Assembly: GCA_051530055.1 (NCBI GenBank)
Contig: CM121342.1
Span: forward strand, 2,762,797-2,826,796
DNA length: 64,000 nt
Source of the DNA: Neoechinorhynchus agilis
Taxonomy: Eukaryota > Animalia > Acanthocephala
Direction: 5' to 3'
How positions within the stretch are numbered: position 1 is the stretch's first letter; the number at the start of each line of letters is the position of its first letter. Of this stretch, positions 20,292 to 56,525 are shown in pieces. The notes under the pieces are model-generated. The model worked only from the letters and a program-made list of their open reading frames with translations, did not search any database and was not told the origin of the DNA. The position numbers and the translations under genes were made by a program.

Positions 20292-20358
20292 TCGTGAGAC
20301 AAAAAATAAGTATCGCAAATAAATAAAGGAAAGTTTATATTTTTAAGGATCACTTGTA

Positions 20359-20406
20359 TTTTAGAGCTGATGATGAATCCGACGCGGTTGGAAACGTCTT
20401 TAATAA
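20359..20406 (+). ncRNA. Hammerhead-like motif, family A, likely inactivated
   Basis: CUGAUGA-u-GAAUC-cgacgc-GGUUG-GAAACGUC: the helix II closing pair is G-G here instead of G-C. Confidence 0.5.
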
Positions 20407-21363
20407 ATAATCATTTACCGGGTGTAGACCTAAACAATAATTTCAACCACATTTCCCGGTACTTCACATATCGACATTTTTAGTATGAATTGATCGAAAA
20501 GTATCGATTTTTCTTTTCCTCCGAATTTGTTCCCAAACCGAAAGCAAACGAAAAATTTTATTACTTTTATTTTGCTTAGCTTTTAATTGCAAAATAAATA
20601 TTAAATTGTAAATGTATAAGTTCATCGACCAATGCAGTGCTTTATCATTTTCATTTGCTTTCTGTTTCGACGTTCTTCAAACTTCTTATTAACGATATAG
20701 GCAACAAATCACTGATATTACTTCCCAAGAAGTCGTTGAATTTTCACATATTATCTCGTTAAGAATAGAAAATGTTAAAAAGGCTTGAAGGTCCTCATGT
20801 CCATTCAGGTGATTTCCTTCTTGAAAGGATCACCATTTTGGGTTAACTGACTGTAGTATAACTCTTATTGACCATGAAAAAGTAGGTTTTAAATAGCATT
20901 CTACATTATATGATGAGCCAAAAAGTGAACTTACCTCCGTTGAACATAATTTATCTTATCTAAATATGAATTTTAACTAGCAACGTTTATTGGATAAAAA
21001 GTAGCACCTAAGCTTTCAAATCCGACAACTCGCTTATTCCCATTTTCAATAAAAATCATGATAAGTTGAAATATTTTTTCAAAGCATTTGAGAAAAGCTC
21101 AAGAAATTATTTTGGTTTCACGTGGTCGTTGAAGAATATCCCAACCGCCCACCCACTAAACAGATCCCAAAATAAAAAAAGATTGTTTACAAAAACAATA
21201 CTTAAAAATCTTAAAAAAATTCGGTCCTACGATTCTCTTATTCTCATTTTTAATAAGAATATGCACCGAGATCGTTAAGATCTTTTTCTCTGCAGCGATT
21301 TGATGCTTCACTGAGACCGACGAATTGAATGCGCTGGAATCTTCATTGTAATTTAAAGAATCC

Positions 21364-22947
21364 TTACTTTGAAAACTCTGCGAACTGGGATCTCGTTTCC
21401 TGTTCGTCTTTCTTAATAACTTTAGAATTTGATACTCCACTTTTAAAAACCGGGGCTGGTCGTTTTCTTAATAATGAGCTTTCATATTGTGAATCGTCTT
21501 GAATCCTTCTCTCCATTTGTCCTCGTGACAATTCAAAACTGTCATTCAGTGCTTGCATCTTCATTGAGGATTCAAGCCCATTATGAAACCCTTGGCGAAT
21601 CATTTGAATAGAAGGTTTAAAGTTCCTCTTTTTTGACGATATCTCTAAGCATTCAACCTTTAATTTTCGCTTTTCAGGAGACGCTCGAGGTTGATAGCTC
21701 TCACTCAAAGATTTGTCTTTTGTTTCCTTTATTTCATTGTTCACTTCCACTTGTTCATTTGCAACTGCAAATGTTGAATCGGACACTTGTTTTTTGCTAT
21801 CTTTCATTGAACGTCTTTTCTTCATTCCTTCATTGGAGACTTCAATGCTCATTGGTTCAGCTTTTGCCCTGCATGAAATCCCTTGAGCTTCAGTGTCTTT
21901 TATAAGTGACCGAAATTTCTTATTTTGTTTTGTATGTTCAAGGAATAGTTCGTTTCCGCCAGACTGCATCATTTTCTTAGATTTTTTCAGCTGGCGAATT
22001 CCATCATAAACTTTTTCGTCTATCTTTTCATTTGATCGGATTCGTTTCCTTTCTTCGATTGATGTTTCTAAGTTATCGAGCTGCAACGATCGCTTTCTTT
22101 CTAACGTTTGAAGCTTGTTAATTTCAATACGACATTCTTGTCGAATCGATTTTACTGAGTCCTTTTGCTCTGTTAACACTGGGGACTTTCCTATATTTAA
22201 CGTATTTTTCCTTCTTTTTATTGTAGGCGATTTTTGTTGCTTAATAGTTTTACTTAGAGATATTTCATCGGTGTTTTGAATTGAGTCGTTTTGTTCCATG
22301 GACGGTATTCGAAAATTTCTATTGGTTGCATCTGGCTCAGAACTTTCATTTGTAGATTTTTCATCGATTGTTCCAATTGAATTATATTGATTCGAAGACG
22401 CTACCTTGCAATTTTTTGCAGAGCTTTTAGTTCGATTACCTTTACCAAGAACTTTCTCATTAATGTTTTTAAGCAAGTCTTTTTGTTCCACTTTTTCCGA
22501 TGATGTTACCGTGATTTCTTGTTGTTTCTTTGCATTTCCATTAGATTGTTGAATACAAAATCCTTCACAAATCGATTCATCTTTAACATTTTCAATTGGC
22601 TCATTCATATCCGGCGGCATTTCTTTATCTTCCACAGCACTTCCTTTTCTTTTGCTCGAACTTTTCTTGCCAAAGGAGCCTTCAACAGATCCATACTTTG
22701 CCTTCAAATAATAATTCCAACTGATGGTCTTAAAAATGTCCGCATTTTTATGAGCGATTCTTTTGACTGTGTAGTCCAGTTGTTGGCACGATGTGGATTT
22801 ATGCGGCTCCGATCTTCTCCTATAGACCACTGTGTCAATTGGTGAAATGTCGTCTAGAGTAACAATTGATTTCTCTACATTCGACTCATTCGTTTCCGAC
22901 TTCTTGTTATCTTTTGCTTTCATTTCCATTTTTGTTGTGTTGGCCAT
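21364..22947 (-). CDS. Lys/Ser/Glu-rich protein, copy 2 (527-aa exon)
   Basis: Uninterrupted 527-aa ORF from an ATG, with about 12 aa differences from copy 1 in the shared region. Confidence 0.65.
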   Translation of the reverse strand: MANTTKMEMKAKDNKKSETNESNVEKSIVTLDDISPIDTVVYRRRSEPHKSTSCQQLDYTVKRIAHKNADIFKTISWNYYLKAKYGSVEGSFGKKSSSKRKGSAVEDKEMPPDMNEPIENVKDESICEGFCIQQSNGNAKKQQEITVTSSEKVEQKDLLKNINEKVLGKGNRTKSSAKNCKVASSNQYNSIGTIDEKSTNESSEPDATNRNFRIPSMEQNDSIQNTDEISLSKTIKQQKSPTIKRRKNTLNIGKSPVLTEQKDSVKSIRQECRIEINKLQTLERKRSLQLDNLETSIEERKRIRSNEKIDEKVYDGIRQLKKSKKMMQSGGNELFLEHTKQNKKFRSLIKDTEAQGISCRAKAEPMSIEVSNEGMKKRRSMKDSKKQVSDSTFAVANEQVEVNNEIKETKDKSLSESYQPRASPEKRKLKVECLEISSKKRNFKPSIQMIRQGFHNGLESSMKMQALNDSFELSRGQMERRIQDDSQYESSLLRKRPAPVFKSGVSNSKVIKKDEQETRSQFAEFSK

Positions 22948-23699
22948 TTTCGAGAATAAGTTATAAACGTTTATAAAGGTAAAAAAAGAAGAAAATAGAG
23001 CCTATCACAGCCTTTGTCGGCGATGCGAGTTTTGTGCTAATTTGTTTGGTACAAATGAAGGTGGAACACGTGAGGTTGCTATGGTAAAATAAGCAAAGCA
23101 AATTTTCTAAGAAAACAAATATTTTTTTCAATAAAAAAAATTAATTTTATTTTTACTGGAAAATTTCTTTTGTTGGCTTTTGGTCCATCAGATTAAGTTC
23201 TGTGTTTTAAGAAATGAATGATTTTAAAAACCTGACGGGCGAAGGTTTTATCCTATGTATTGCAATTTTCTAGCATTTGGATTAACATTAAGTTGAATGT
23301 TTTTTTGTGCTTTTTGCAATTACTGCCGTCTTTTATCATAAGAACTTTGATGGGATTCTCGCGAAAAATTTTCAATTTATGTTGTTAGTTGTTTAATTTT
23401 GTCATATTAAATTTTTGTTGACGATAATGTTAGCCCAATATTAAAGGTACATTTATTTCTAGATTGTATTTGGTATTCTATTTTAATAGTTGCTGGAACC
23501 TTTATGGAAAAATTAAGTCAAGATTGCAAACATATTTTTATGTTTTATTTTTTTTAATTTATTTGATTCTTTGAAGCAATGCTTACATATAACAAATGTA
23601 CATGACAATTTCGATTTACGAATCCCTTCTCGTACTTATGGTTCCAACTTCTCCTTTTTAAGCATTTTTTGTAGTGAAAGTTTAGTTAGACAAAAGCAC

Positions 23700-23772
23700 T
23701 TTTCGAGGGTTTATTTGATTTATAAGGAAAATACATGCAAGCGTAAGTGTAAAAGCTGTCGAAGCTGACAAA
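23700..23772 (-). pseudogene. Short duplicate of the N-terminal coding segment of the PKA-like kinase
   Basis: FVSFDSFYTYACMYFPYKSNKPS versus FVSFDSFYTYASMYFRHKFNKPS at ~25075-25145. Confidence 0.75.
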
Positions 23773-24135
23773 GGTGGAGATCCTCACTTTAACGCTTACA
23801 GCTCTAACGTTTCCTCTTATCATCAACGATACCGAGTGCAAGTAAAATAAATAAAAAACAATTCGCCTCAACTTATCGCAATTTGCATGTCGCGTTTTTT
23901 CTAAGTCGAAAATGGCGATAATAGAATTGTAGCGATTTTCAAAGCACAGGAAGGTTACAAGCGGTTCTCCTCTGTTCGAGCTCCTTGATATTATTTAAAG
24001 AAATCGCAAATTCAGCGAGTTTATGCAAAAAATTAATATTATTAGTCAAAAATTGCGTGGAAGGAGTACAGCGTCTTTTTGAATAAGGAACGTTAGCCCA
24101 TCGCACAATCGGAAAATAATATAAAGTTTTATTGG

Positions 24136-25182
24136 CTAAAATTCGTCAAATAAGCTACCGTACCGTTCACTAGGAGGATTTGTCAAGGAGGCGAGCGGTG
24201 ACTTCGGTTTGTTTGCGGCCGGATTAATAGCAGGTTTATAGATCATGTCAACCTTTCGTTGGAACAGATTCCACCAGTCAATCACTTTAAAGAATTTATG
24301 AGCTTTCATATGATCGATTCCACCTTTTCCGCATCCATATCGCCTATCTGGATTTACTTTCAAAAGTCCGACGACGAGATCCTTGAGCTCCGATGAGAAA
24401 TGTTCAGGAACTTTAAACCTCCCCGATTGAGCTTTAGCCATGATCCTCATTCCATCTGATGCCACAAACGGTGTGTAACCTGCATTGAGCTCGTAGGACA
24501 AAACGCCAAGAGACCACCAATCGCAACTTGTTGTATATCCAAGTCGTCCGGAAACTTCTGGGGCCATGTATTCTGGAGTTCCACAAATAGTTATTGCTCT
24601 CTCGTTCAGGAATTTAGCGAATCCGAAGTCCGTTACTTTGACATAGCCGCTGTCTTCTACCAAAATATTCTCAGCTTTGATATCCTTATGAGTAACATTA
24701 ATTCGATGCAAGTAATCGAAGACGAGAATAATCTGTGCTATAATCAATCTACTTTCGTCTTCATTAAATCTTCGTTTTGAACGCAAATGTTCGTACAAAT
24801 CACCGGTCGGAATTAACTTCATTACAATGTACAAATGGCCACTGTCCTTATAGGATCCCAAGAATTCGACAATATTTGAATGAAATATACTGCTTAGCAT
24901 TGCTTTTTCGTAGATGGTTCGCTTCGTTTGCCTGGTATGGACAAGATATTTCTTCTCAAAAATTTTGACGGCAAAGTGGTCGTGATCTTTGGTACCAACA
25001 GCGACTAAACCAAAAGCACCCCGACCAATGGTCGTTTGAAGGACAATATCACTGGTGTCGAAATTTGGAGACGGCGAAGGTTTATTGAATTTATGGCGAA
25101 AATACATGCTAGCGTAAGTGTAAAAGCTGTCGAAGCTCACAAAAAATGTCCAATCACGAACTTCATTTGGAATCATTGACAT
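24136..25182 (-). CDS. cAMP-dependent protein kinase catalytic subunit-like AGC kinase, intronless CDS (~348 aa from ATG 25182)
   Basis: GRGAFGLV, FAVK, HKDIKAEN, VKVTDFGFAK, ICGTPEYMAPE, DWWSLGVL and a C-terminal FDEF (PKA FxxF tail). An acceptor-like tract lies just upstream of the ATG. Confidence 0.9.
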   Translation of the reverse strand: MSMIPNEVRDWTFFVSFDSFYTYASMYFRHKFNKPSPSPNFDTSDIVLQTTIGRGAFGLVAVGTKDHDHFAVKIFEKKYLVHTRQTKRTIYEKAMLSSIFHSNIVEFLGSYKDSGHLYIVMKLIPTGDLYEHLRSKRRFNEDESRLIIAQIILVFDYLHRINVTHKDIKAENILVEDSGYVKVTDFGFAKFLNERAITICGTPEYMAPEVSGRLGYTTSCDWWSLGVLSYELNAGYTPFVASDGMRIMAKAQSGRFKVPEHFSSELKDLVVGLLKVNPDRRYGCGKGGIDHMKAHKFFKVIDWWNLFQRKVDMIYKPAINPAANKPKSPLASLTNPPSERYGSLFDEF

Positions 25183-25230
25183 CAGATGATCTCTGTGAGG
25201 TGAAGCTAACAAACAAGTAGAAAGTCAGCT

Positions 25231-25968
25231 TTAATTGATTCGTTGCCACGACTTCATCGCAAAGTTAATTTCAAAGCAATTGAACGAGCAAAATTGTTGT
25301 GTGCATAAGTCGTCGCGAACTTGTCTTTGTCCCTCCACCATGGCAATCGAGATGGGTTGACCTGTCCTCCTTGAATTAAGAAAAAACTTGATCTTGCAAT
25401 TGAACGATTGCTCGAAATTTTCCCGCTCTTCATTGGTGATTGAAGGATCAATTCCTTTCACCAGAAATTGTACTTTTTGAGAGCTATATGAAACATCATA
25501 CACTCCCTTGGGAAGATTAGAAATAGAGAAGTTGACCAATTTTTCCAACCAAGTATGTGACACCATATCAATTCTAAGCGTGCCGGCGAAATATGTTAAG
25601 TGATCGATTCTTTTAATGCCATCGTTTTTAAAAGAACGAGTCCAAGGGCTTACTATTTGATCGTACATGATTTGTTTGGGAAGGGTTGGTTTTGATTTGA
25701 AGATAGCTATGTATGGCCATTTTTTTGTCGGTGAAGACAAGTAATTTGATATTGGAATTTGTTTTGATGATGTCGACTGGAAGTTGTTTCCCAGGACTTG
25801 TGATTGTTGTAGCTCGAGATTAGAGAGTAGCTGCTCTCGCTTCTTCAGAACAAAGCCTCCATGATCATCAGAAGGATCAGGAGGTTTCGAAGGGTGTTCA
25901 CTACTAAATACGCTTTTTCCGTCAGAACGAAAACTGCGCATGATGACTGAGTCCGTGAAGCAGTACAT
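25231..25968 (-). mobile_element. Truncated ORF1 (gag-like) of an I/Jockey/L1-type non-LTR element
   Basis: 245-aa ORF with an N-terminal KPPDP, a disordered linker and an RRM-like VKGIDPSITNEE block, ending before any CCHC knuckle. The family assignment is from recalled motif style only. Confidence 0.5.
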
Positions 25969-25980
25969 AAAGGATCCAGC

Positions 25981-28185
25981 CTGTTATAGAGTGATCGATC
26001 GTGACGCGCAGGGCGCGTTATAATCAGTGATTGGGTAGAAATAGTAGATGCTATCGTTGCGGGAAAGTTGGTCATTTTGCAAGGAAATTTAAGACAGCGG
26101 TCACGAAACAATTCGACAAAGAAGACGATGAAGTAATTCGTGGTATCAACGCGATTGGAAGCAATCAAAAGATCACCGTGATTGTAAGAGTCGAGGGGAA
26201 GTTAGTTGAATTCGAATATGATACCGCGGCCGGCGTATCGGTAATTCCACTGCGAATATGGAAAAAGTTATGTTCCAAAACGCTAAGGAAGGGTCTGAGG
26301 CTCAGAACTTACAATGGTAATCACATCGATACTCTTGGTACAAGATTTGTTTCGGTAGGCTGGGCGGCAGAAAATAGTCGAAGTCGCGCGCAATTAGGGA
26401 CTATCGGACATCGAGGGAACGAAGAAATTGCGATCGATACAAAAACTATATCTATAGAAGATGACCAAAAATTGATGACAAGCGAAGAACCTCGTCAAGA
26501 AGAGTTGATGACGGACATGAAGACGATTTAAGCGTTAAAAGAAGATCTCAACAAGGTTAGAAGGAATGGGAGTGTTAAGAAAGATCGACCTAGTGTAGGA
26601 GTCCGGAAAGGCGAGAACAAAATAAGATTATGCGGAGATTTTCGTATAACGCTAAAGGAGGCGCTGAGTAAGGACGGTTGGATAATTCCCAAGCTAGAGG
26701 ACGTGCTGTACAAAGTGGCAAAAGAGAAAAATGCAGCAAGCTGGATATCAAGGAAGCATATCTGCAGCTTGCAGTGGGGCAGAAGTCCCAGAAATTGTTG
26801 ACGATCTTAACACTAATGGGGTTCTATCAGTCCACCAGGCTTCCTTTTGGAATCAATACCGCTCAATTCATCTTTTAAATATTTATGAACCACCTACTCG
26901 ACAGAATACCGAATATGGCGGTCTACCTTGATGATAAAGTGATCAGTGGAGAAAACGATAAAAATCACTTATCAAACTTGAGAAGAGTATTAAGTCGTCT
27001 AGAAGCCGCCGGGCTGACGCTAAAAATAGAAAAATGCAGATTTATGGAGGAAAGCATGAAGATATTGGGAATGAATTGGCGAGCCGAGACTATAAGTGCG
27101 CAAAAGACGAAATTGTAATCAATGATAAATTGTCCATCACCGACATCGAAGAAACAGCTAAGGGCTTTTCTTGGGGCCGTAGGTTACCATGAACGATTCT
27201 TGCCTCAGCTACATGCAATATGCAGTCCACTCCACGCGTTGGCTAGCCCGAATGCGAACAGGAAATAGTCTACTCGAGCACAAACTGCCTTCGACAGAGT
27301 TAGGGAGCTTATGCGAAGTCCAAAAGAGCTCATTCCGTATGCACTTGAAAATGAGGTGATGGTGGCGTACGATGCCAGTGAATCAGGGTTCGGTGCTGTG
27401 CTCCTGCAGCAGTACGAAAACGAGTAGAAACCAGTGGCATACGCATCAGGAACCTTATCACCAGTTGAAAAGAATTTTATGCTACAATTGACAAGGAAGC
27501 CGCTACGATTCTATTTGGTATAAAGAAATTTCACCATTTCATATTTGGAAAGAGATTCCGTTTAAGAACCGATCATAAACCTCTGATTCACATTTTTGGC
27601 GCTTGAAGAGAACTGAGTAGAATACGAAGCAATCGGCTACGAAGATGGACCGTTGCCATGATGAAATACAACTATGAGATCGAATTCGTCAGGGGAAACG
27701 AAAATGTGTACGCCGATGCATTGTCGAGAATACCGGAACCGAGAGATGGAACCGTCGAAAGTCGTGTCGAAGCGATAGACCTGGTAGATTGTGATGATTC
27801 AAGAATCATAAACGCAGAGGTACTAAAACGAAGCTTGAAGAAGGATACGGTGCTCGCAGTGGCCTACCATCATTCCCCCGATTTACGAACATATTTCGAG
27901 ATGCTTATCGGGCTAAGACTTCGCCCAGCGGTGTTTCAAGCGGAAACTTCTCATCAACGTGGAGAGGACAATGGAAGAGAACAAGAGCAACTCCGCTCCT
28001 GTCCTTCCAACTAATAAGCTCCGTGGAGCAGTAGCGCACAGGGTGAAGCGTCACCTCGGAAATTGATGGTCCCGCTCACACGAGTCCAGGGATCAAATGA
28101 GCTCTCCTACTACATGGGATTTTGGATGCTTGATAAGGAGGTCGAGGCCTCGAAAATTTGTATGTAAATCTCGAGGAGGGAAAAA
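25981..28185 (+). mobile_element. Degenerate Mag-type Ty3/Gypsy element with internal deletions
   Basis: CYRCGKVGHFARK knuckle, EYDTAAG protease, IRLCGDF/LDIKEAYLQ/YLDD RT, DASESG and TDHKPL RNase H, and a polypurine tract gaggagggaaaaa at ~28173. A possible LTR stub starts tgttata at 25982. Confidence 0.85.
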
Positions 28186-28859
28186 CTCGCCGTATAGAGA
28201 AAATTTAGGAACAATATTTCAGCGTTTACTCCTTCGTTCCTTTCAAAACAATCTACAAAAATAGTTGGAACAAGGTCGTAGAGATGATTAACTCGTCCCT
28301 TTGGTTAAGCACAACGAAACGTCTCACGTTGACCGTCTCCTCCTTACCACCAATCTCATTTTTCGCCTCTTGCGAGATGAGCAATGCTTCCCCGAGCGAA
28401 TGTTCCATTTTATTTCCCGCTTGGTACCCCACAAAACTCGACAGGTTGACCCCTTGACCTGGGTTGAACTTTGAGTAATGTTTAGCCGGCCACGTTTCCG
28501 CTCCGTCTTCTCAATGTTCCTGTGCGCATTGAACACAGGTGGCTTCGTCGATGACATTACTCATCCCGCAAAGTTACCTTGTCGGAGTCTCCGGAGCTTG
28601 GGCCTTGCTACCCGAATGCTTAAACACAAAAGACACGATATGAGACATTGGGTGCTTTTCTTCGTGATTCGTTGTCCTTGTTAGGTTGCGGCGTAATGTT
28701 GGAACGTTCCTGTGAATCAATCTCTTTATGCCGCTCGTTAATTTTTTCACCAACGAATGAGATTCAAAGGATCGTTAAAGGATCGATATTCTTTTCCTCG
28801 TTTTGAGCGAACGGTCTGCTTATTCCCTGAACAGCGGTTCTTTTAGCCAATTACAGTCG

Positions 28860-31800
28860 TATCTCATCGTAATGTAAATTGCTTGCTTCATTGCCCAGGG
28901 AGATGGTGAGAAGCTCGATGCATAACTATGATTTTCTAACAACATTGTAACTTCAAAGGGCACACCAAAATTTTGTTTGCGGATTTTTCATATAGGAAAC
29001 ACAGAATTTGGAACAACTCTTCATTGAAGAGCACTTTTAACAAAATTAAATCTTTGGTTAAAAGTTCAAGCCACCTTTTGGTTGTCCCAACAGTTTCACA
29101 CTGGTCATTGAAATCTATCGTAAACGGATCGTTGTGCTTCTTCGCTTGTGACCGACGTCCAATTTTTACAAGCTTTGTCAAAACGATTAGACAGTTATTT
29201 GAGACAAATTTGACACTCAGTCTTGTTCCTTTAGCCTGGATCAACTTCCTACAAAACTCGTTGTATCCTTTCAAGGACAACTGATTGTTATTATTAATTA
29301 ATTGTTAACTGTGTGTATGTGGCTTTTGCAATAATAATAATAAGAGTAGAGTAATACATTATTTTCACATACAGGAGCAACTAAACAATTTTAAATTATT
29401 CGACAACAAAAGGGATTTAGATAATTTTAAGCGCTATCAAACGTTTAGAAGGCGATTTATACTTGATAATTCCTTAGATCTATTTTATCATATTGTCCAA
29501 AAAAAGATAAACTTTATTAAGTTTTTAGCAGTGCAAATCTCAGCTAATAAAATGATTAGCCAGCAAACCTCATAAACCACACAGCCTTCGACGAGTTATC
29601 TGCAAATGGGTCATCCAGTGATTCTTCAATAACACAATTATCACTCAATAATTTGCTATAATGTCGATTGTGATTAATTATCCAATCTGCAAATTTCGCA
29701 ATCTCAGACATCTGTATAGCCAATAAATCACTTGGCTCTTTCCATCGCTTAGGCATTTGATTTTGCACGGATATTTGAAAGCGCCGTGATTGTTTTAATA
29801 TCCTCCAAATAATAAAGTATTTCTATGTTGATTTTCAGGCATTGGAAACAAAGGGCGAAAATCAATATACGAAGTAAAAAATTTCTTCATACTTTTCTGC
29901 TAGTTTCAATGCGTCTTTACTTTCAGGTTTTTTCCACATAAAACTGTTAAGCCATTTCCAGCGTTTCGCCATCAGGTTCACCTGATATCCTACCGCCTGT
30001 GCCCAGAAATGAAGTCTTTTACGGTAAGTTTTATGATTCTGCAACTGCATTTCTATAAAATGCAAATGGGCATCCTAAATAGTCAAGGAAAATAAATAAA
30101 GGCTGAAGAATATTTTACCCCGTTTTTTAGTTGAAATGAAAAAATACGAATATAATGAACGTCGGACGACGATCGTAACTTTTCCCATGCAAAGCTACTA
30201 AAATCTCGATTCCAAAAGATCTATTATATCTACGTGTTTATAAGAATACGACCTACTAGGTTTTCATTCTAAAGACACGAAATGTGAAAGTTTAAATTCG
30301 ATCAAAATTTGACAGTCGTAATTTAACCATAGCTATTTCTAACCTTCAGATTATTGTTAATCCCAGTCACCGTGTTTTGAACAGTAGAGAACACAAAATT
30401 ACTAAAATCTTCGTGTTTGTTATCATAAGAGAAGTCGATTCCGCGACTTTTGTCAATTTCATTAATATTGCCAATTCCTGAGCCTTCATTCTAATATATT
30501 TCAAGAAAAGTTCACCTATTTCGAGACCGTTTATAACAATCTCATTGCCTACCATGAACTTATTTATCGATTCAAAATCGTTAACCTTGTCAGTTTGATC
30601 GACTTCATAATCCTCGCTGATTGCATCAATCTCAAATATCCCAGGATATTGGCCCTATTATCAATAGAAAAAATTAAACTTTCATCGATAGAACCTACTC
30701 ACGGATATAGCACTAAACATGATGAACTCCGCAGCCTTTTCAAGTGCTGATATATATGAGTCTTGAAGTGATTTCAGAGTACGTTCATGACTTTCGCTCA
30801 CATCGACACAATGTTGTTCATACTGTAAGTGAAAGTATTTGTTAAAACTACACTGTAATTTTAGAACTTAGTTATGCTCATGTTGGTCATCGAAAGCAAA
30901 TGGTTTCAATATTTTATAAACCAATTAAATTTAATGATTCACAGGATCGTATAAACAAAAAACAAAACAGGGTCCCTTAGGCCATATTATACTTCTCACC
31001 ATTTTTGTCCACAATAAAATCCTTGGAGTGACGTCCAATGCAGTAGTTATGAAATGATCGAAAATTCTTATCATTTCAGAGTCATTTAATTCACTTCGAA
31101 TTTCTTGAATCTCCGCTTCCATGTAATCCCGGCTATTGATGAATTTTAACAGCCTTTCTAGCGACCATTTCTAAAATCACTTATTAATTTATTTTGGGGC
31201 AAATCGTAACCACTCAAACCTTCACGAATTCGTCTGAAGGTGTAACAATATCATTGTCGATTTCCTTTATTCTTGGTTCAAATAAATTCGATCCGTGTCG
31301 CTCAACATCTACTTTATTAACTTGCCAATTATGTTTTGAACGATTGACAACGATAAGGGGTTCCTTTTTCATTAAATTTCAATAAATTTAAAATTCGATA
31401 ATTAAATATTTTCTTGCTCACAATTTTTTCACAGATATCGCAAAATATAATATCCTTAAGATTTTCGTATATAGCATTTTTATCAGCTACTTCCTCGAGC
31501 CACACATTACCCGTAATAAGTAAAACATTGAGACTTTTTACCATTCGAATATTATAAAGCTATAAAAAAATTTGATTTGCGAGACAGCAACCAATGAGAA
31601 ATTACGCTGGTGATGTTAGAAATATTGTTGAAAGATACATTCAAAGAGCGTAGGTGTTGGCATGGCGCAATGTTATCCACAGTCTTAATAACATTATGAG
31701 CAAGATTTAAATTAATTAGATTCTTCATTGATTCTAGTCCTCTTATCTCTGAAATTTTATTGTAGCTTAAGTCTTGATTTTCTTTAATTTGAGGGCACCA

Positions 31801-32160
31801 AAAACTTTTAATACCTAATAGACTCAGATTATGCAATTCGGTTAAGCCACAGATAGTCTCTATATTATTACTGGTTAATATAAGATACCTCAAATTGGGC
31901 ATGACTTTTATGCCTGTCATCGAATTCAGACCTTAATCCGTTTTTCATTGAAAGCGAGATCACATTTGGCAGAAACCTGTTCCAATGAGCGTTATATCCT
32001 CCATCATATCATAATCATCAGCATCAACGTTCTCAATAAATTGGCAATTCAACTCGTCTTGGCCAATAGTATGTGCTCTTAAAGGATTTCTATCTCTATT
32101 GTGATACATAAAAAATTCTTCATTCTACGAAAGCGACCATGGGTTTTAAACGAAATAGAA
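28860..32160 (-). CDS. Multi-exon SDS22-type leucine-rich repeat protein (LRRC9/DRC3-like, unresolved)
   Basis: PNLRYLILTSNNIETICGL, DLSYNKISEIRGLESMKNLINLNLAHNVIKTVDNI and LRSLNVSFNNIS, followed by several same-strand exon-sized ORFs down to ~28860. Exon boundaries were not resolved. Confidence 0.6.
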
Positions 32161-33379
32161 GGCTTACTTGATTTTGATCTTTTGGTCCATAAGCAACTCT
32201 ATAAACATCATCAGTCGGAATATGCATTCTACATATCGATGGTTAGCGCCATTAATTATTCGAGTTACCATGGAAGCCAAGTTTGATTAATACTTCGCCT
32301 TTTGCCTTAATCCCTAACGGGCCCAAAGATGCCAGGTTGTGAATTTAATGATAATCAATTTAATTTTCTATATAAAAGCAGATTCCTAAAATTTTTAAGA
32401 AGCTTTCACGCATTTAAATAATTGCTTGTTTATGGCGGAAAATTAAATTAATTTTGTCAAATCATTGGACACCGTCTCTCGCTTTTAATCTTTGTAATTA
32501 TTCTGTTTATTCGATCTTTTCATTTATAATTAATTTCGACTTTTAAATTAAACATTAGTAGTTTTGATAAATTAAATGTGTTTTACATGAGGAACTTCAC
32601 AAGTAAATGAATTTTATACTCCTATAGAATGTTACAGTTTTGTTCGTTTCGCAGCATAAATCTCTGAGTAAGGATCTAAATGTTTCCATACGAGAAATTT
32701 CCGATGGATTCTGTGTAAGATTTTGATTTACAACAGAAATAAGTACTTATTTATCTCTTTCGACAAATTGACTGTTGTAGATTCTTTATTCCGCAATTGG
32801 GCAATTTTTAAGTAGCGCCTAAGCTTTCAATTCTTGAAAGGATCACCATTTTGGGTTAACTGACTGTAGTATAACTCTCATTGACCATGAAAAAGTAGGT
32901 TTTAAATAGCATTCTACATTATATGATGAGCCAAAAAGTTAACTTACCTCCGTTGAACATAATTTATCTTATCTAAATATGAATTTTAACTAGCAACGTC
33001 TATTGGATGAAAAGTAGCATCTAAGCTTTCAAATCCGACAACTCGCTTATTCCCATTTTCAATAAGAATCATGATAAGTTGAAATATTTTTTCAAAGCAT
33101 TTGAGAAAAGCTCAAGAAATTATTTTGGTTTCACGTGGTCGTTGAAGAATATCGCAACCGCCCACCCACTAAACAGATCCCAAACTTAAAAAAAAGATTG
33201 TTTACAAAAAGAATACTTAAAAATCTTAAAAAAAATTCGGTCCTACAATTCTCTTATTCTCATTTTTAATAAGAATATGCACTGAGATCATTAAGATCTT
33301 TTTCTCTGCAGCGATTTGATGCTTCACTGAGACCGACGAATTGAATGCGCTCGAATCTTCATTGTAATTTAAAGAATCC

Positions 33380-34963
33380 TTACTTTGAAAACTCTGCGAA
33401 CTGGGATCTCGTTTCCTGTTCGTCTTTCTTAATAACTTTAGAATTTGATACTCCGATTTTAAAAACCGGGGCTGGTCGTTTTCTTAATAATGAGCTTTCA
33501 TATTGTGAATCGTCTTGAATCCTTCTCTCCATTTGTTCTCGTGACAACTCAAAACTGTCATTCAGTGCTTGCATCTTCATTGAGGATTCAAGCCCATTAT
33601 GAAACCCTTTACGAATCATTTGAATAGAAGGTTTAAAGTTCCTCTTTTTTGACGATATCTCTAAGCATTCAACCTTTAATTTTCGCTTTTCAGGAGACGC
33701 TCGAGGTTGATAGCTCTCACTCAAAGATTTGTGTTTTGTTTCCTTTATTTCATTGTTCACTTCCACTTGTTCATTTGCAACTGCAAATGTTGAATCGGAC
33801 ACTTGTTTTTTGCTATCTTTCATTGAACGTCTTTTCTTCATTCCTTCATTGGAGACTTCAATGCTCATTGGTTCAGCTTTTGCCCTGCATGAAATCCCTT
33901 GAGTTTCAGTGTCTTTTATAAGTGACCGAAATTTCTTGTTTTGTTTTGTATGTTCAAGGAATAGTTCGTTTCCGCCAGACTGCATCATTTTCTTAGATTT
34001 TTTAAGCTGGCGAATTCCATCATAAACTTTTTCGTCTATCTTTTCATTTGATCGGATTCGTTTCCTTTCTTCGATTGATGTTTCTAAGTTATCGAGCTGC
34101 AACGATCGCTTTCTTTCTAACGTTTGAAGCTTGTTAATTTCAATACGACATTCTTGTCGAATCGATTTTACTGAGTCCTTTTGCTCTGTTAACACTGGGG
34201 ACTTTCCTATATTTAACGTATTTTTCCTTCTTTTTATTGTAGGCGATTTTTGTTGCTTAATAGTTTTACTTAGAGATATTTCATCGGTGTTTTGAATTGT
34301 GTCGTTTTGTTCCATGGACGGTATTCGAAAATTTCTATTGGTTGCATCTGGCTCAGAACTTTCATTTGTAGATTTTTCATCGATTGTTCCAATTGAATTA
34401 TATTGATTCGAAGACGCTACCTTGCAATTTTTTGCAGAGCTTTTAGTTCGATTACCTTTACCAAGAACTTTCTCACTAATGTTTTTAAGCAAGTCTTTTT
34501 GTTCCACTTTTTCCGATGATGTTACCGTGATTTCTTGTTGTTTCTTTGCATTTCCATTAGATTGTTGAATACAAAATCCTTCACAAATCGATTCATCTTT
34601 AACATTTTCAATTGGCTCATTCATATCCGGCGGCATTTCTTTATCTTCCACAGCACTTCCTTTTCTTTTGCTCGAACTTTTCTTGCCAAAGGAGCCTTCA
34701 ACAGATCCATACTTTGCCTTCAAATAATAATTCCAACTGATGGTCTTAAAAATGTCCGCATTTTTATGAGCGATTCTTTTAACTGTGTAGTCCAGTTGTT
34801 GGCACGATGTGGATTTATGCGGCTCCGATCTTCTCCTATAGACCACTGTGTCAATTGGTGAAATGTCGTCTAGAGTAACAATTGATTTCTCTACATTCGA
34901 CTCATTCGTTTCCGACTTCTTGTTATCTTTTGCTTTCATTTCCATTTTTGTTGTGTTGGCCAT
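33380..34963 (-). CDS. Lys/Ser/Glu-rich protein, copy 3 (527-aa exon intact; downstream exons displaced)
   Basis: 7 aa differences from copy 2. The gene 3' part is relocated upstream by the permutation. Confidence 0.55.
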   Translation of the reverse strand: MANTTKMEMKAKDNKKSETNESNVEKSIVTLDDISPIDTVVYRRRSEPHKSTSCQQLDYTVKRIAHKNADIFKTISWNYYLKAKYGSVEGSFGKKSSSKRKGSAVEDKEMPPDMNEPIENVKDESICEGFCIQQSNGNAKKQQEITVTSSEKVEQKDLLKNISEKVLGKGNRTKSSAKNCKVASSNQYNSIGTIDEKSTNESSEPDATNRNFRIPSMEQNDTIQNTDEISLSKTIKQQKSPTIKRRKNTLNIGKSPVLTEQKDSVKSIRQECRIEINKLQTLERKRSLQLDNLETSIEERKRIRSNEKIDEKVYDGIRQLKKSKKMMQSGGNELFLEHTKQNKKFRSLIKDTETQGISCRAKAEPMSIEVSNEGMKKRRSMKDSKKQVSDSTFAVANEQVEVNNEIKETKHKSLSESYQPRASPEKRKLKVECLEISSKKRNFKPSIQMIRKGFHNGLESSMKMQALNDSFELSREQMERRIQDDSQYESSLLRKRPAPVFKIGVSNSKVIKKDEQETRSQFAEFSK

Positions 34964-35604
34964 TTTCGAGAATAAGTTATAAACGTTTATAAAGGTAAAA
35001 AAAGAAGAAAATAGAGCCTATCACAACCTTTGTCGGCGAAGCGAGTTTTGTGCTAATTTGTTTGGTACAAATGAAGGTGGAACACGTGAGGTTGCTATGG
35101 TAAAATAAGCAAAGCAAATTTTCTAAGAAAACAAATATTTTTTTCAAAAAAAAATTAATTTTATTTTTACTGGAAAATTTCTTTTGTTGGCTTTTCGTCC
35201 ATCAGATTAAGTTCTGTGTTTTAAGAAATGAATGATTTTAAAAACCTGATGGGCGAAAAGATTAGGAATTCGTCAATTTATAGCTGTCTTTTATTGTAAA
35301 AACTTGGATCGCATTTTAGCACACCGACGCGTTGTCTTCTTTATTTGTTTTTAATATTGTGAACCGATCATTCATTTCTCCAGATTGTACCTTTATTTAT
35401 TAAAGCGTTTTAGCACTTATTTTATCTCGGTTTTGCAATTCTTAATACTTTTTTTCCTGTATGGAGATACGTACGAAAATAGTGGAAAGGTGTGAATTGT
35501 CTTAAGTAAGATATCGATTGTATAATTTTCGTCCTTATTGCATTTGGTTTTTGCTCTGCTTTAAAACTTTCGCATAAATTCCAACACGTCGAAATTAATA
35601 TGAA

Positions 35605-35804
35605 TTGAAATTATTGTTTAGGTCTACACGCGCTAAATGATTATTTATTAAAGACATTTCGAACCTCGTCGGGTTCATCATCAGCTCTAAAATACAAGTT
35701 ACTCATCCACTTATATTTTAGAGCTGATGATGAATCCGACGAGGTTCGAAACGTCTTTAATAAATAATCATTTGCCGGGTGTAGACCTAAACAATAATTT
35801 CAAT
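35605..35804. repeat. ~95-bp-arm inverted repeat holding two head-to-head family-A hammerhead motifs (35645-35692 minus; 35716-35763 plus)
   Basis: ttgaaattattgtttaggtctacac...cagctctaaaatacaag, a ~12-nt loop, then cttatattttagagctg...gtgtagacctaaacaataatttcaa. Confidence 0.9.
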
Positions 35805-36379
35805 CACATTTCCCGGTACTTCACATATCGACATTTTTAGTATGAATTGATCGAAAAGTATCGATTTTTCATTTCCTCCGAATTTGTTCCCAAACCGAAA
35901 GCAAACAAACGAAAAATTTTATTACTTTTATTTTGCTAAGCTTTTAATTGCAAAATAAATATTAAATTGTAAATGTATAAGTTCATCGACCAATGCAGTG
36001 CTTTATCATTTTCATTTGCTTTCTGTTTCGAAGTTCTTTAAACTTCTTATTAACGATATAGGCAACAAATCACTGATATTACTTCCCAAGAAGTCGTTGA
36101 ATTTTCACATAATATTTCGTTAAGGATAGAAAATGTTAAAAAGGCTTGAAGGTCCTCATGTCCATTCAGATGATTTCCTTCCTGGATGCGAAGAACATAT
36201 AAAAGATGAGCGACTTTGGAAAGCGATAATGAAACTCACAAGTGAATGCTACTTTCAACCTTCCCAACACGTGGACAATGTTTTAAAGATTCTAAAGAAG
36301 TCCCACGTAAAGGGCAAAATATCAAAAATTAAATCCTTTTTTATTTACTGTGCCTTCATCAAAACAAATTTTTTAAAAA

Positions 36380-38876
36380 TTGCTTTCCCCCGCCTTGTTC
36401 TCAGCTCTAGCAACTCAATATCGGGGAATTTGACATCCAACATTAAAAACAGGCTAGTTGAGTTCGACGCGAATATGAAGAGAATGACCGAATCCTCAGC
36501 GACTCCCGAAAATTCGTCTAGCAAAAGCCGTAAACAAGGCACAGTTCGGCCACTGGGTCAACGCGTATCGGCGAAGCTCGCAGACGGGAATGTTCGAGGT
36601 GCGGTTCGGCTTCTAGCCTCAACTGAAGATTTTGCGCCAAATCATGGCACAACTTTTGAGGCTCCATTAAAGTTGCATCCGTCATCGGAGTCCAACTCCA
36701 CCAATTTTACACCAACTGCTCAGGCATTCCGAGCAAATAGTTTAGAAATAAGGAAAGCTGTGTCCTCCTTCGCCAATGGCTCAGGACACGGGCCGGATGG
36801 CTTGCGTCCATAGCACCTCAAAGACATGATGTCTTTTTCTACAGGTGCTTCGGGAATAGCCCTCGGAACTGCTTTGCTTAAAATAGTTGATATTTTCATC
36901 GAGGGCTCCATTGGCAATTTGGCTACACATCTTTTCTTCGGCGCCTCTTTGTGTGCTTTGTCCAAGAAAGATGGTGGGATTCGTCCCATCGCCATTGGCT
37001 GCACTTTGCGTAGGTTAGCCGCGAAAGTTTTATGTAGGAGAATCTCCGATAAAACGGGAGAATTTCTAAGATCCTGTCAGTTAGGTTGCTGCACTCCTTG
37101 TGGAGTTGAAGCGGTCGTGCATGCTCTGCGAAAATTTATCCCCCAAAGAACAAAGCCAACAGCAATTCTGAAAATAGATTTTAAAAATGCTTTCAATACC
37201 TTAAAAAGGGAAATAATGTTAAAAGCGATTGAGGATGTCGCCCCAGAGGCTTACCCTTACTTCTGGAGAGCATATGCTAACCATACGCCACTGCTGTACA
37301 ACGACAAAATAATTTGGTCGCAGAGTGGTGTACTACAGGGAGATCCACTCGGCCAGATAGGCTTCTTCGTCACAGTAAATGATCTTGCCCATTCAATGTT
37401 TCCTCATTTCAACGCTTGGTACTTGGACGATGCCACACTCGGTGGCGATCCAAGTGTTGTTTTGAGCGACCTTCAAAGGATCGTGAATGTAGGTGACCGC
37501 TTGGGAATAGAAACAAATCTCAAAAAATGCGAACTTCTCGTCCTGAACGCAACTGAAAAAGAGCGCTCTCCAATCTCTAGCGATTTTGAATCAGTTGCTC
37601 CTGGTCCGGGTTTGATCACCCTTGACCAGCTCACACTCCTCGGGAGCTGCGTTCTTGCTCAGAATGTTGCGAAGGACCTGCACGCACAAATCCCGAAAAT
37701 GGAGTTGCTCTGCGGCCGAACTTCTGAGTTTTCGGTACATGAGGGTCTCTTCTTGATCAAGAATTGCCTCTATCTGCCGAAATTGCTTCACAAGCTAAGA
37801 GCAGCTCCATGTTTCGGAGAAGACAAATTGTTAGGAGAGCTCGGCGGGGTAATTCGTAAGTAGCTGGGACATATATTGAATGTCAAATTTTCTGACACAG
37901 GTTGGCGACAGGCTACTTTTCCCACGACTTATGGTGGTTTGGGAGTTCGCACCACTTCAGACGTCGCTTTACCTGCCTTCCTCTCCTCTTGCCGGGCAAG
38001 TAAAGTCTATGTCGATGCCATTTTAGGCACATCACTGAAGGATGCGATCTTTGAAACAGGATTATCTCAATGGCATCAATTGACAGGCATCAACCAGCTC
38101 CCCGCAAATGAATGCAAACAGTCGTCTTGGGACATTCCTCTTGTTCAGAAGATTCACAACTCTTTCAAAGATCTTCTGGATGAGGTGTCTCAGGTCCAGC
38201 TGGTAGCCTGTTCCACGAGGGAGTCGGGAGCGTGGTTGAATGTTCTCCATGTAGGGAAACTTGGAAATCTCCTTGCTGACTCAGTCGTCAGGATCGCAAT
38301 ATCCTTGAGATTAGGCCTACCGATTTGTATCCCGCATCGCTGCCGCTGCGGCACTATAGTGGACTCTTCGGGGAGACACGGTCTAATATGCAAGACGTCA
38401 GCGGGACGATTTCCAAGGCATGCTGAAATCAATGCCACGAACGCTTTCCCTTCCAAACATTCTAGAACCCACTAATCTTTGTAGATTAGATGGAAGACGC
38501 CCTGATGGCGTGACCGTATTTCCTTGGCGGGAGGGAAAATGTTTGTTGTGGGATGCAACGCGTGTGGACACGTTGGCAAACTCCAACATCGGCCACTCGA
38601 AAAAAGGTCCAGGAAGAGCGGCGACGGCTGCAGAGGATCGGGAATGCTCAAAATACAGGGAGCTAACCCGAAATTACCATTTTGTCCCCTTTGGTGTGGA
38701 AACGTACCTTGGGAGGGTCGGCACTGGCCCTCCTCGTGAAGGACTTGGGGAAACGAATTTACGCGGCGACTGGAGAGCCAAGATCGACGTCGTTCTTGGC
38801 GCAAAAAATAAGCATTGCGGTGCAGCGGGGCAATGCGGCCAGCATTTTGGCCAGCGCCGATGAATGGGAGCGTTGA
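36380..38876 (+). mobile_element. CRE-like RLE non-LTR retrotransposon, 5'-truncated (lineage 2)
   Basis: AFPRLVL, KLADGNVRGAVR, GPDGLRP, GGIRPIAIG, DFKNAFN, QGDPLG, WYLDD, CRCG..GRHGLIC, RPDG..WDATRVDT and QKISIAVQRGNAASIL, interrupted by stops (36811, 37861) and frameshifts. Confidence 0.92.
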
Positions 38877-39076: not shown

Positions 39077-39613
39077 TTAATTGAACAAACTGAGTTTCGA
39101 TTTTGCGTCATCAACTATAGCTGAACCTACACATGAACAAAATTCCTTAAAGCTGATTTTTCCGTCCATGTCCTTGTCCCAGTAGAGAATTGTCATCTCA
39201 ACAACATCAGAAAGTTGCCGATCGTTCATTTGCGTTCCCACAACTTTTCTTAAAACCTGATAAAGCTCATCTCGTGAAATATAACCGTCTCTATTTATGT
39301 CGTAAACGTTGAATAAAAACCTGAGCTTCATCTCACATTCTCCTTTGACTGTAAACGTTCCTACACCATTGATAAATTCGTCGAAATCGACTTCACCGTT
39401 TCTGTCTTCATCAAAAAGACTGATAACTCTATCGAGAAGACGATTTGAACGAAGTTCTGGAATTGTCATGAACTCTTCTCGACTTATTTGACCAGATCGA
39501 TCGCGATCGATCCGTCTAAACTTACGGCGTAAAATGCGCAGCTCTTCAGGAGCGAATGCTGCTTTCATTGCTTTATTTCTTTGTGCTTCTTTTGATGAAA
39601 ATCCACAACCCAT
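39077..39613 (-). CDS. Calcineurin B-like EF-hand protein, intronless
   Basis: Four EF-hand loops (DRDRSGQISREE, DEDRNGEVDFDE, DINRDGYISRDE, DKDMDGKISFKE), KLRFLFNVYD and an N-terminal MGCGFS. Confidence 0.9.
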   Translation of the reverse strand: MGCGFSSKEAQRNKAMKAAFAPEELRILRRKFRRIDRDRSGQISREEFMTIPELRSNRLLDRVISLFDEDRNGEVDFDEFINGVGTFTVKGECEMKLRFLFNVYDINRDGYISRDELYQVLRKVVGTQMNDRQLSDVVEMTILYWDKDMDGKISFKEFCSCVGSAIVDDAKSKLSLFN

Positions 39614-44646: not shown

Positions 44647-47600
44647 GTTCTCTATAACAATTAACCGAACCTTTTGTGCCTGAGACCCCTCAGCTCACCA
44701 CTAACTTTATTTCGATACCTGATATCGTGCGGTTTCTGCCCAGGAACGTCCTGAAACGGATCCCTAAATGCGCGCGATATCTGATCGCCAAAGCATTTAC
44801 GGGATTGTTCAACGATTGCCTTCAAACGAACTGTGCGCCTTCATGGACACGGCTCTTCGCTTTCCCGCGCTTAGTCCTCTGCACCAGCGGTGATTCTGGG
44901 GTGTCTTTGACATCAAGAGGTTCGTAAGGGACGCACGAAGAGTTCGCTGCTGTTTTTCAAAGCGATCACTGACTGAACGTGTCTCTTCGAAGCTTGCGGA
45001 CGGAGATGTTCGGGTGGCTGTACGGTTATTGCCATCCTCTGGCAGTTTTGCAGAAGGAGACGACGAGACACTACAAATACTCCGGTCCAAACGCCCATGC
45101 AGTAGTGGCAGTTTTGAGATTCCACCTCCTCCCGTACAAAAAAAGCCATCTCATCTTTTGCAAATGGTTCGGGTCACGGGCTTGACGGGCTAAGATCTCA
45201 ACACCTAAAGGACATGATGTCCTTTTCAACTGGTGAAGCAGCTCTCTCTAGGAAGTGCGCTTTCTCGAATAGTCGACCGCCTGACTGGAGTGGACCTGAA
45301 CCCCGTTGCAAAGGACCTATTTTTCGGAGCCTCATTGTGTGCGCTCACAAAAAAAGAAGGTGGGATCCGTCCCATCGCCGTACCTTCGACGATACGCCGA
45401 CTCGCAGGAAAAATTCTCTGCAAACGTATTACAGAGAAAACCGGACAGCAACTTCGTCCAGTCAAACTGGGCTGCTGCACATCCTGCGGGGCGGAAGCTA
45501 TGGTCCACTCGCTCCGAAACTTTGCTACGAGAAGCTCAGAGCCGTGCGCGATTCTTAAGTGTTATTTTCGGAACGCCTTTAACTCTCTCAATAGAGAAAC
45601 GATGTTCCGTGCAATTAGGGATTATGCCCCAGAAGCCTTCAAGTATTTTCTCAATGCCAAAGGGACGGCGACTCCTTTGCTTTTCAAAGGCCACCTCATT
45701 TGGTCCGAAATAGGAGTGCAGCAAGGAGATCCCCTCGGTCCAATCGTATTCTCACTAACAGTAAATCCAATAGCGCATTCTCTCCATTCCAGTTTCAACG
45801 CTTGGTACCTGGATGACGCTACGCTCGGAGGTGATCCCTCCGTTCTACTGCGCGATTTGGAGACGCTGATTACTGAGACCTCGAGAATGGGCATTGAGCT
45901 CAATGTTGGAAAGTGTGAGGTCCTAGTATTAAATATCGAAGACGCCGCCAAAGTCAAATAACTAATGGCTGGTTTCGAGACCGTAGCTCCAGGTCTGAAA
46001 CTCGTGACTCGGGAGCAACTCAGCCTCCTGGGTATTTGCGTATTTGATTCAAATGTGGAAGATGGGATCGGCCGTATCATACCGAAACTTTCATTGCTGT
46101 ATGATAGGGTGAGCGCTCTTTCGGCTCATGAAGCCTTGTTTCTCATAAAGAACGCGCTCTTTATGCCGAAATTGTTATACAAGGTTCGCACAGCAACATT
46201 TTTCAAACATAAGGAAGGATTGGCTAAGCTCGACGACAAGGTGAGGGCTTGTCTCGAGCGTATTTTAAATGTCCAGCTCTCAGATGAGGCGTGGCGACAA
46301 GCTTCATTGCTTGTGTCATCTGGGGGATTGGGCATTCGGGCGCTAGTAGAATTTGGCTTGCCAGCCTTTCTTGGATCGTATGAAGGGAGTCAACCGATAG
46401 CGAAGATAATTCCGGGGGAAAAGTTTTGTCTTGACCAAGACTTTGTGGTGGCGGTTGAGGAATGGCGCCAGCAGATAGGCGCTAACCATGTTCCCGTGAA
46501 TGGCATCAGACAGTCGATCTGGGGCAGGCCTCTCGTCGCGAGAGCTCACAGCTCTCTACTTTCAGGTTCTCGCGATGGGGTCGTCCGAGCTAGATTGTTG
46601 GCAGTTTCGACACGAGAATCTGGGGCGTGGTTGGAGGCTGTTCCTCTGGCATCTGTGAGAACTCTTCTCACGGACGAGGTAACGAGGATCGCAGTGTCCT
46701 TAAGACTTGGTCTCTCGATATGCACACGACATCGCTGTCGATGTGGGTCTTTGGTTGGTGCTTTCGGGCGACACGGCCCCGTTTGCCGAAAGTCAGGAGA
46801 AAGGTTCTAATGCCATTCTGAGATCAAAAGCGTAATTTCTCGGGCGTTGAGAACGGCGAACTTCCCCAACATCTTTGAACCCGCCCATCTTTGTTGACTA
46901 GACGGTCGTCGACCAGACGGAATTTCGGTCTTTCCGTGGCGGGAGGGCAAATGCCTTCTCTGGGAGGCAACGATTGTGGACACTTTCGCAGTAAGCAACA
47001 TTCCCTACTCTCGAAAAAGCTGGAGATACAGCCTAACCAGGAGCCCACTATTTTGTCCCCTTCGGAGTAGAGACGTATGGATCGCTTGGCAGCTCGGCAC
47101 TCACTCTGCTCCAAGATCTCTCGAAGAAATTGAGAGAAACGACCGGCGACGCACGAGCAGGTGTATTCCTTCGACAAAATATCTCGCTGGCAGCACAACG
47201 AGGCAATGCTGCAAGCGCGATAGCGACGGTCGAGGAAGGAGAGAAGCTAAGATTTTGCGGACGGTGGTGATTGCGCGTTTTGTACTTTATTAAGTTCTAC
47301 AAATAAAAGTTTAATATATGAAAATGTTCTTAATCTTTTTAAAGGTAAAATCCCACCTTCAATGAAATCCCAATTGAATTCTAAGTTTCATTATTGAAAA
47401 AAGAAGAGGAACCATGAACCTTCCAATCAATGGGTGCCTCGTGTAAAACCTTCCCCACCGATTATTTTTCATTTTTCAATGTGCCCTCTGAGATGCAATC
47501 GCATCTTCGGTCGTCATTGGGCTTTGGTTGCGCGCCAATACTTACTGCTTGTAAGTTTTTAAATATGTGAGTTCGTCTACCTTTTTACAAAAAATCGTGT

Positions 47601-56500: not shown

Positions 56501-56525
56501 ATCAAAAAGTTTTTTGATTAAACAG

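Follow-up and report, generated by a model that had tools for sequence, protein, structure and literature searches.

Colour-sidedness in cattle reportedly arose by serial translocation of the KIT locus via circular intermediates. In the human genome, the duplication-inverted triplication-duplication structures at MECP2/PLP1 are ascribed to replication or repair rearrangements of the fork stalling and template switching/microhomology-mediated break-induced replication (FoSTeS/MMBIR) type. Penelope-like insertions are built differently: an inverted, 5′-truncated copy stands beside a direct copy, the terminal repeat carries a hammerhead motif, and the whole is bordered by a target-site duplication (PMC8557442, PMC3846280, PMC4209133). 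Here we describe a locus of the thorny-headed worm Neoechinorhynchus agilis (assembly GCA_051530055.1, contig CM121342.1, forward-strand positions 2,762,797 to 2,826,796; this stretch of 64,000 nucleotides is hereafter the window, and position 1 is its first letter) that invites comparison with all three systems. A gene-bearing block made of two parts, A and B, is found there both in the order A-B and in the order B-A, and the original prediction took the latter for the footprint of a circular intermediate closed at a hammerhead repeat. The locus is a complex segmental duplication of a known general kind, and with a probability of about 0.45, we favour a reading in which break repair at the DNA level, switching templates within a duplication hot-spot, left the permuted block behind as a by-product and an inversion between repeats came after; a circle would be unnecessary.

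The copies are named by locus: I lies at the left end of the window in inverted orientation, II at 20351-23243 and III at 32831-36181. At locus II, A (20351-20820, plus strand) and B (20818-23243, plus strand) are contiguous, while at locus III a truncated B (32831-35257, plus strand) precedes A (35708-36181, plus strand), and the repeat alignments agree with this order. The B copies of loci III and II are 98.6% identical over 2429 nt and the A copies 96.4% identical over 474 nt. The junction strings quoted earlier read as stated (gatttccTTCttgaaagg at the donor, caaTTCttgaaagg at the left and tttccTTCctgg at the right junction), and the A-end and the B-start of the locus III copy both map to the single TTC at 20818-20820. 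The arrangement at locus III is thus truly a circular permutation, by one unit, of A-B. Its A consists of the long arm (PR) of a palindromic element described below and 340 nt found three times in the genome, with an ATG at 36133; B at locus II runs on into its native upstream region, X.

When the window, extended along its contig by 17.8 kb to the left and 9.9 kb to the right (negative positions lie left of the window), was compared with itself, a third A/B copy emerged, inverted, with A at 2058-2531 and B from −364 to 2060, that is, reaching 364 nt beyond the left window edge; the part of copy I inside the window is 1-2531 (minus strand). In the 46-Mb genome, the unique part of A has just three copies and so has B, and this locus holds all of them. 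Copy I belongs to an inverted duplication in which −12148 to 8972 (arm I; 1-8972 in the window, minus strand) matches 13909-32830 (arm II, plus strand) at 99.1-99.9% identity across a 4.9-kb spacer, S (8973-13908, plus strand). Arm II holds Y (13909-20350, with a forkhead gene), A, B and X (23244-32830, with a kinase gene, a long terminal repeat retroelement remnant and a leucine-rich repeat (LRR) gene), and the duplication doubles the forkhead, kinase and LRR genes as well as a gene for a 527-aa protein carried by B. Arm I is longer than arm II by 1914 bp at the position of 27946 and by 279 bp at 23286. Using a for PR plus A, b for B, x for X, c for the filler f and the other palindrome arm PL, u for the unique sequence at 36182-36379, L for the left flank and primes for inverted blocks, the layout is L · x′ b′ a′ Y′ · S · Y a b x · b c a · u.

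Both edges of arm II are informative. The arm homology stops to the base at ...AAGCTTTCAA (32830), which is also the left junction 32830|32831 of the permuted copy; in arm I, the sequence equivalent to AAGCTTTCAA continues into ATCGTGATGAGCC... The inner edge, 13908|13909, is the exact terminus of a reverse-transcriptase repeat family (11942-13908), and no inward extension of the arm homology was found behind this spacer repeat. The outer flank L of arm I carries a host gene for an FAD-oxidoreductase of the DAO family, whose GxGxxG exon, less than 50 nt from the junction at its start, lacks an in-frame ATG. Inside x there is a candidate for the first exon, ATGTTTCC...TCTGT|GTAAG (modelled by eye; the arm II copy is at 32680-32714, with a GTAAG donor). 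Spliced by eye to an AG acceptor lying 26 nt within L, this candidate keeps its frame across the junction, which suggests that x|L is probably native.

At locus III, A is preceded by an inverted arm of 96 nt (35604-35699 against 35709-35804). It is part of a head-to-head twin of a Penelope-type mini-element of ~130 nt (35609-35840, without assigned strand), in which PL (~35609-35699), a loop and PR (35709-35840) follow one another. Perfect direct repeats of the 10-nt TATGAATTGA border it at 35599-35608 and 35841-35850 (both plus strand, read from sequence and alignment; null ~0.01 for windows placed alike), and the right one lies inside block A and was copied with A to loci I and II. A genome search with 35604-36400, of which the first 235 nt (35604-35838) are the family part, gave 913 first-look candidates, 40 of which were scored and yielded 86 matches. 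Most copies of the mini-element are head-to-head twins and some are solo; one arm ends at equivalents of 35799-35804 and the other at equivalents of 35834-35839, with variable inner ends. Direct repeats of 8-14 nt border the outer ends of other twins (11 nt at L008, 14 at L010, 13 at L013, 10 at both L025 and L028). Within the window, the repeat is found at three loci, all in A copies. The 232-nt twin has just the anatomy of Penelope-like insertions, with its head-to-head, centrally 5′-truncated structure with variable inner and fixed outer 3′ ends, its 10-nt target-site duplication, its many genomic copies and its CUGAUGA...GAAAC-GUC core with a 4-nt palindromic helix III. It differs from them in being a ~130-nt non-coding mini-copy, and in that a second direct repeat and a duplication spanning cargo are absent.

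Because the twin bears its own target-site duplication, f (35258-35598, plus strand, adjoining the left target-site duplication) and the unique part of A must have been contiguous before the twin inserted. It follows that the filler, which had been treated as DNA of unknown source, is the native left flank of A and that the inverted arm is not a closure scar. The filler is single-copy: a genome-wide DNA search matched it to itself only, and a local short-word search found no template. Judged from these sequence features, the twin is an ordinary older insertion into contiguous filler and A that predates the duplication. The proposal that a circle closed at the hammerhead repeat is not borne out, given the 10-nt duplication of this twin and those of its relatives; any circle would close at the B-end|filler-start joint 35257|35258, 346 nt away. 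The twin travelled as a passenger when the 3.35 kb were duplicated and did not serve as the vehicle. The filler-twin-A order is intact at locus III only, and since it is native there, A at loci I and II are copies cut at the palindrome centre: A at locus II starts with CACTTGT at 20351, exactly at the inner end of PR, and has neither PL nor f.

The inverted arm had been called a hammerhead arm. The inversion and the core motif are present, but no Rfam hammerhead model matched 35500-35900 at gathering scores or at E<=10, where only spurious long-hairpin microRNA models appeared. PR at locus III and the family consensus have the core CUGAUGA...GAAAC-GUC, a 5-bp helix II, a 4-nt palindromic helix III and a weak helix I. 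Of 37 distinct copies, 12 have an intact core, and its minimal form is kept in PR at locus III; PL has a broken core (GAAAT for GAAAC) and PR at locus II a mismatch in helix II. The box TTACTAACAAACAAA stands directly before CTGATGA in copies L008, L010, L014-L019, L021, L025, L026 and L030, and ACTTGTATTTTAGAG takes its place in the copies at the permuted-block locus, giving two 5′ variants of one hammerhead unit.

This bears on whether RNA was the vehicle. An unspliced or antisense read-through transcript over f-twin-A-B, or an RNA circle, might have been reverse-transcribed in trans by a Penelope-like or long interspersed nuclear element (LINE) enzyme and inserted. Reverse-transcriptase elements abound at the locus, and on the minus strand an AATAAA precedes the f-start end by ~32 nt, but neither the closure nor the opening point coincides with the predicted GUC cleavage site of the hammerhead (~35753-35755), and the core of PL is broken. 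In Penelope capture, cargo lies between two direct terminal repeats and one inverted repeat, all within one target-site duplication (PMC3846280). At locus III that signature is absent: there is one twin, and its target-site duplication encloses the twin alone. Reading of the junctions revealed neither a target-site duplication around 32831-36181 nor a poly(A) tract around the 3.35-kb block. We regard an RNA-mediated origin as highly improbable. As had been argued before, the non-coding flanks kept in the 3.35-kb copy speak against an mRNA retrocopy, which these flanks and the absence of poly(A) rule out. A Helitron or a DIRS-like element was also rejected: neither the ends nor the order of the repeats fits, and a recombinase is absent. 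The further idea that ribozyme-bearing elements mobilise host DNA finds nothing to support it in the permuted block, whose junction features are unrelated to the cleavage site.

The polarity of the duplication was assessed from B. Its 527-aa open reading frame (ORF) is on the minus strand and intact at locus III (33380-34963) and locus II (21364-22947); intactness refers to these two copies, both wholly inside the window, and the start of the arm I copy falls outside it, to the left. The protein is rich in Lys, Ser and Glu and belongs to a small gene family linked to the kinase gene; it matched no Pfam family, and only weak look-alikes were found in the Atlas. Copies II and III differ by ~7 amino-acid changes for 13 nucleotide differences, which gives no sign of constraint yet. 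Paralogues of B (~75%) are also present on small contigs. At locus II, the alignments of those on contigs C90, C5 and C33 cross the B|X boundary (23243) without a break and reach 23702, and at locus III they stop at 35233, and the adjacent kinase gene is syntenic on C5 and C65. From the paralogue alignments and this synteny we conclude that B-X is native at locus II, and that at locus III B is truncated and the B|f joint derived. As outgroups, C33, C90, C5 and C65 settle B-X and are uninformative for A, f and Y. The direction from donor II to recipient III assumed in the original prediction does not hold: B-X is native at II, but filler-twin-A is intact at III only. Each locus keeps one native flank, and so a simple donor-to-copy reading fails.

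The right flank of the permuted copy gives a further clue to polarity. Sequence u198 (36182-36379, plus strand) is unique and lies right of A, outside the downstream repeat. The frame from the ATG at 36133 is open through u198 for 82 codons, while at loci I and II it stops after 25 codons; a protein search with the 82-aa A-u198 frame found no homologue. The sole recurring piece of u198, 36188-36284 (97 nt), matches contig C33 at 80%. This relative is at L049 (393-649, minus strand), 50 nt upstream of another hammerhead mini-element, on a contig that also carries a paralogue of the 527-aa gene, and the u198-like piece stops short of the A|u198 junction. Beyond u198 lies a LINE-like reverse-transcriptase element of many copies (36380-38876, plus strand, RVT_1 domain), which is 5′-truncated and outside the duplication. 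Its genome copies align from 36380 and elsewhere extend further 5′ with unrelated sequence. Its ORF was considered as part of A and rejected, as other copies start at 36380 and extend differently.

We next consider the junctions themselves. The 3-nt TTC is present at two of them, and this was the basis for the claim that one crossover between a circle and a target caaTTCctgg explains both. Both ends do fall on TTC, but the left junction is also the edge of the 19-kb inverted duplication, and in the other arm the same X end enters the host oxidoreductase gene and not ctggatgcg; the one-crossover account is not supported. The contiguous empty site ...aagctttcaaTTCctggatgcg is absent from the assembly with up to 3 mismatches allowed, and homology between the donor and the hypothetical target beyond the 3-nt TTC is at chance level, like that of random TTC sites (p 0.2-0.37). 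The left junction (32824-32840) forms a perfect 7-nt inverted repeat with a 3-nt loop, CTTTCAA-TTC-TTGAAAG (null ~8e-4). The left junction of A at locus II is spanned by the 9-mer AAGGATCAC (20345-20353, plus strand), which recurs at 20825-20833, 5 nt right of the TTC. The two copies are 480 nt apart and lie at both edges of this A (null probability 0.003-0.006). They look like microhomology with a short templated insertion, or like a target duplication around A; such a repeat at both edges is typical of microhomology or templated-insertion repair.

A circle can be reconciled with these data in a corrected form. The ancestral order would be f-twin-A-B-X, and a 3.35-kb copy from f to B would have circularised at B-end|f-start, opened at or recombined via the TTC, and entered between the X-end and u198; a later deletion, with one end at the palindrome centre, would have removed f together with the left twin arm from the donor, and Y-A-B-X would at last have been duplicated in inverted orientation. 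Such a history accounts for a copy exactly one unit long with both ends on the same TTC, needs no filler of outside origin, and is compatible with the target-site duplication of the twin and with native B-X. Circular-intermediate translocations are said to be documented at cattle KIT, and the worm locus shares with them a circularly permuted duplicate whose outer ends both lie at one source point. Unlike the KIT segments, which reportedly span hundreds of kb, the worm copy measures 3.35 kb, is on the same chromosome 12 kb away, and abuts the edge of an inverted duplication; no empty site is in the assembly, and the polarity evidence is split between loci. The corrected circle also depends on the later donor deletion: the present source lacks f and the left twin arm, and f-twin-A-B contiguity must be assumed and then lost. 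The 19-kb inverted duplication would have to end, by coincidence, exactly at the insertion point. In the other arm, the X-end enters a host gene that probably spans the junction, which means that X-end|u198 was probably never ancestral. The AAGGATCAC repeat around A at locus II and the A-u198 open frame would be left to chance, and the supposed crossover has neither extended homology nor, in the assembly, an empty site. We therefore consider a circle, the chief rival reading, unlikely, though not negligible.

Break repair with template switching would reach the present layout in three steps. Order and mechanism are what we infer here, starting from features that the sequence shows: the three copies, the inverted repeat and its edge, the twin target-site duplication, native B-X and the mosaic differences among copies. 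In the orientation of arm I, the ancestral order would have been the oxidoreductase gene, X′ (from the LRR to the kinase gene), B′ (the 527-aa gene), Y′ (the forkhead gene), S, f, the twin, A and u198, with A|u and Y|B as ancestral junctions. In the first step, a break at the B-start, in the 3′ flank of the 527-aa gene, would have initiated error-prone copying with template switches. X′-B′ would have been re-copied, giving the tandem joint B-start|X-end (32830|32831); an inverted copy of A would have been joined via the 3-nt TTC/GAA microhomology and ended at the twin palindrome centre, a fragile point; six templated bases, seen as the AAGGATCAC repeat, would have followed before synthesis returned to Y′. 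In the second step, B′-A′-Y′ would have undergone a fold-back inverted duplication across S, with its inner joint (13908|13909) at the reverse-transcriptase terminus and its outer joint at B-end|f (35257|35258). In the third, a single homologous exchange between inverted B copies would have flipped the interval. Worked through on paper, the observed layout does result from L x′ b′ x′ b′ a′ Y′ S Y a b c a u by this one flip.

With this history, the left junction would be the X′-B′ tandem joint, and hence the arm edge would coincide with it to the base, as is seen. The adjacencies are few: A-end joins B-start or u, B-start joins A-end or x-end, and x-end joins B-start or L. Among the junctions, B|x and c|a are native on the evidence given above, and x|L probably is. 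Break repair is further favoured by the three copies, the inverted arms of 19-21 kb, the entry of the X-end into the oxidoreductase gene in the other arm, the twin with its target-site duplication, native B-X, AAGGATCAC at both edges of A at locus II, the 82-codon A-u198 frame, the retroelement terminus at the inner arm edge, the clustering of differences among the copies and other recent duplications in the window; the whole region looks like a duplication hot-spot. The twin hairpin probably served as a breakpoint. The comparison with MECP2/PLP1-type structures is close in several respects: read along the ancestral order proposed above, copy numbers run 2-3-2 (X 2, A and B 3, Y 2) with one inverted copy, the junctions have 0-3 nt of microhomology and a short templated insertion, one breakpoint is at a palindrome centre, and the inverted repeats are capable of a flip. 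It departs from the canonical layout in the inversion of the whole 19-kb block and in a third copy of direct orientation and permuted order; no fewer than two events and a flip would be needed, and the case is an invertebrate germline one reconstructed from sequence.

Several points weigh against break repair as we propose it. It requires three events, each of them inferred. The polarity of A|B versus A|u198 rests on indirect clues, namely an 82-codon frame without homologues and a 9-mer, and the oxidoreductase first exon is a by-eye splice model. The 7-nt inverted repeat CTTTCAA-TTC-TTGAAAG at the left junction is left unexplained, and a circle would be expected to leave precisely such a copy, permuted by one unit and with a single TTC at both ends. 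The divergence among copies must also be accommodated. The three A+B copies are about equidistant, with 28, 27 and 25 private changes, and arms I and II differ unevenly, with no substitution in 28909-32830 versus ~1.5% in 19909-23908, around A+B; both patterns need gene conversion or mutagenic repair synthesis. The site patterns of the three copies are clustered (36 runs versus ~50 expected, p 0.0005), which points to exchange among them and in this respect fits the proposed history. Such patterns make simple dating unsafe.

The same patterns raise the question of whether the assembly is at fault, that is, whether mis-joined haplotypes or collapsed repeats produced the three-copy inverted layout wholly or in part from a locus that is in truth simpler. 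Between the arms, stretches without any divergence (0%) adjoin stretches of 1.5%, variants among the copies are mosaic, paralogous fragments are present on small contigs, and tandem or inverted Penelope structures are known to upset assemblies (PMC8557442). Against this, the 91.7 kb compared contain no gap (N), the arms are distinct, with 106 substitutions and the indels of 1.9 kb and 279 bp, and all junctions are clean and each unique in the genome. A simple haplotig misjoin was rejected because the flanks of the two arms, outer and inner alike, are mutually non-allelic. An artefact is thus improbable.

Other features of the region were noted in passing. The spacer S holds a fragment of an Alg14-like host gene. 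Its reverse-transcriptase repeat (11942-13908, and 11230-12487) represents a second family, distinct from the element at 36380-38876, and parts of the spacer are found again, 96-99% identical, 93-145 kb further upstream on this contig. Members of the family at 36380-38876 (L035-L043) measure from ~2.5 kb upward and have a Cys-rich region after the reverse-transcriptase domain; the copy described here is frameshifted. Just right of the rearranged region, an intronless gene (39077-39613, minus strand) encodes a 178-aa calcineurin-B-like protein with four EF-hands. No part of the window resembled human DNA. Further recent duplications, inverted and direct, at 97-99.5% identity pair 49314-50926 with 58139-56527, 48147-48575 with 56347-56773 and 46742-46960 with 56123-56341, and 52675-53961 consists of two tandem units of ~645 bp with 86% identity.

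If a circle was involved after all, an extrachromosomal DNA circle of 3.35 kb, with a whole host gene and a Penelope-type hairpin on it, would have arisen in the germline of this thorny-headed worm and would have re-entered the chromosome 12 kb away via a 3-nt match, at a past or future breakpoint of a 19-kb palindrome, making this a small-scale invertebrate counterpart of the circle translocations reported for cattle KIT. The claim that ribozyme-bearing elements mobilise neighbouring host DNA through circles has lost its main support. A permuted duplicate need not imply a circle, since the same arrangement results when a tandem joint and an inverted duplication are followed by one flip. If break repair with template switching is correct, the locus would be a clear case of a compact invertebrate genome multiplying a gene and building a large palindrome: it would have used joints with microhomology, broken at the middle of a hairpin that a transposon had made, and formed one junction where a retroelement ends; the mechanism would be a familiar one, and recognising it would help the annotation of this genome.

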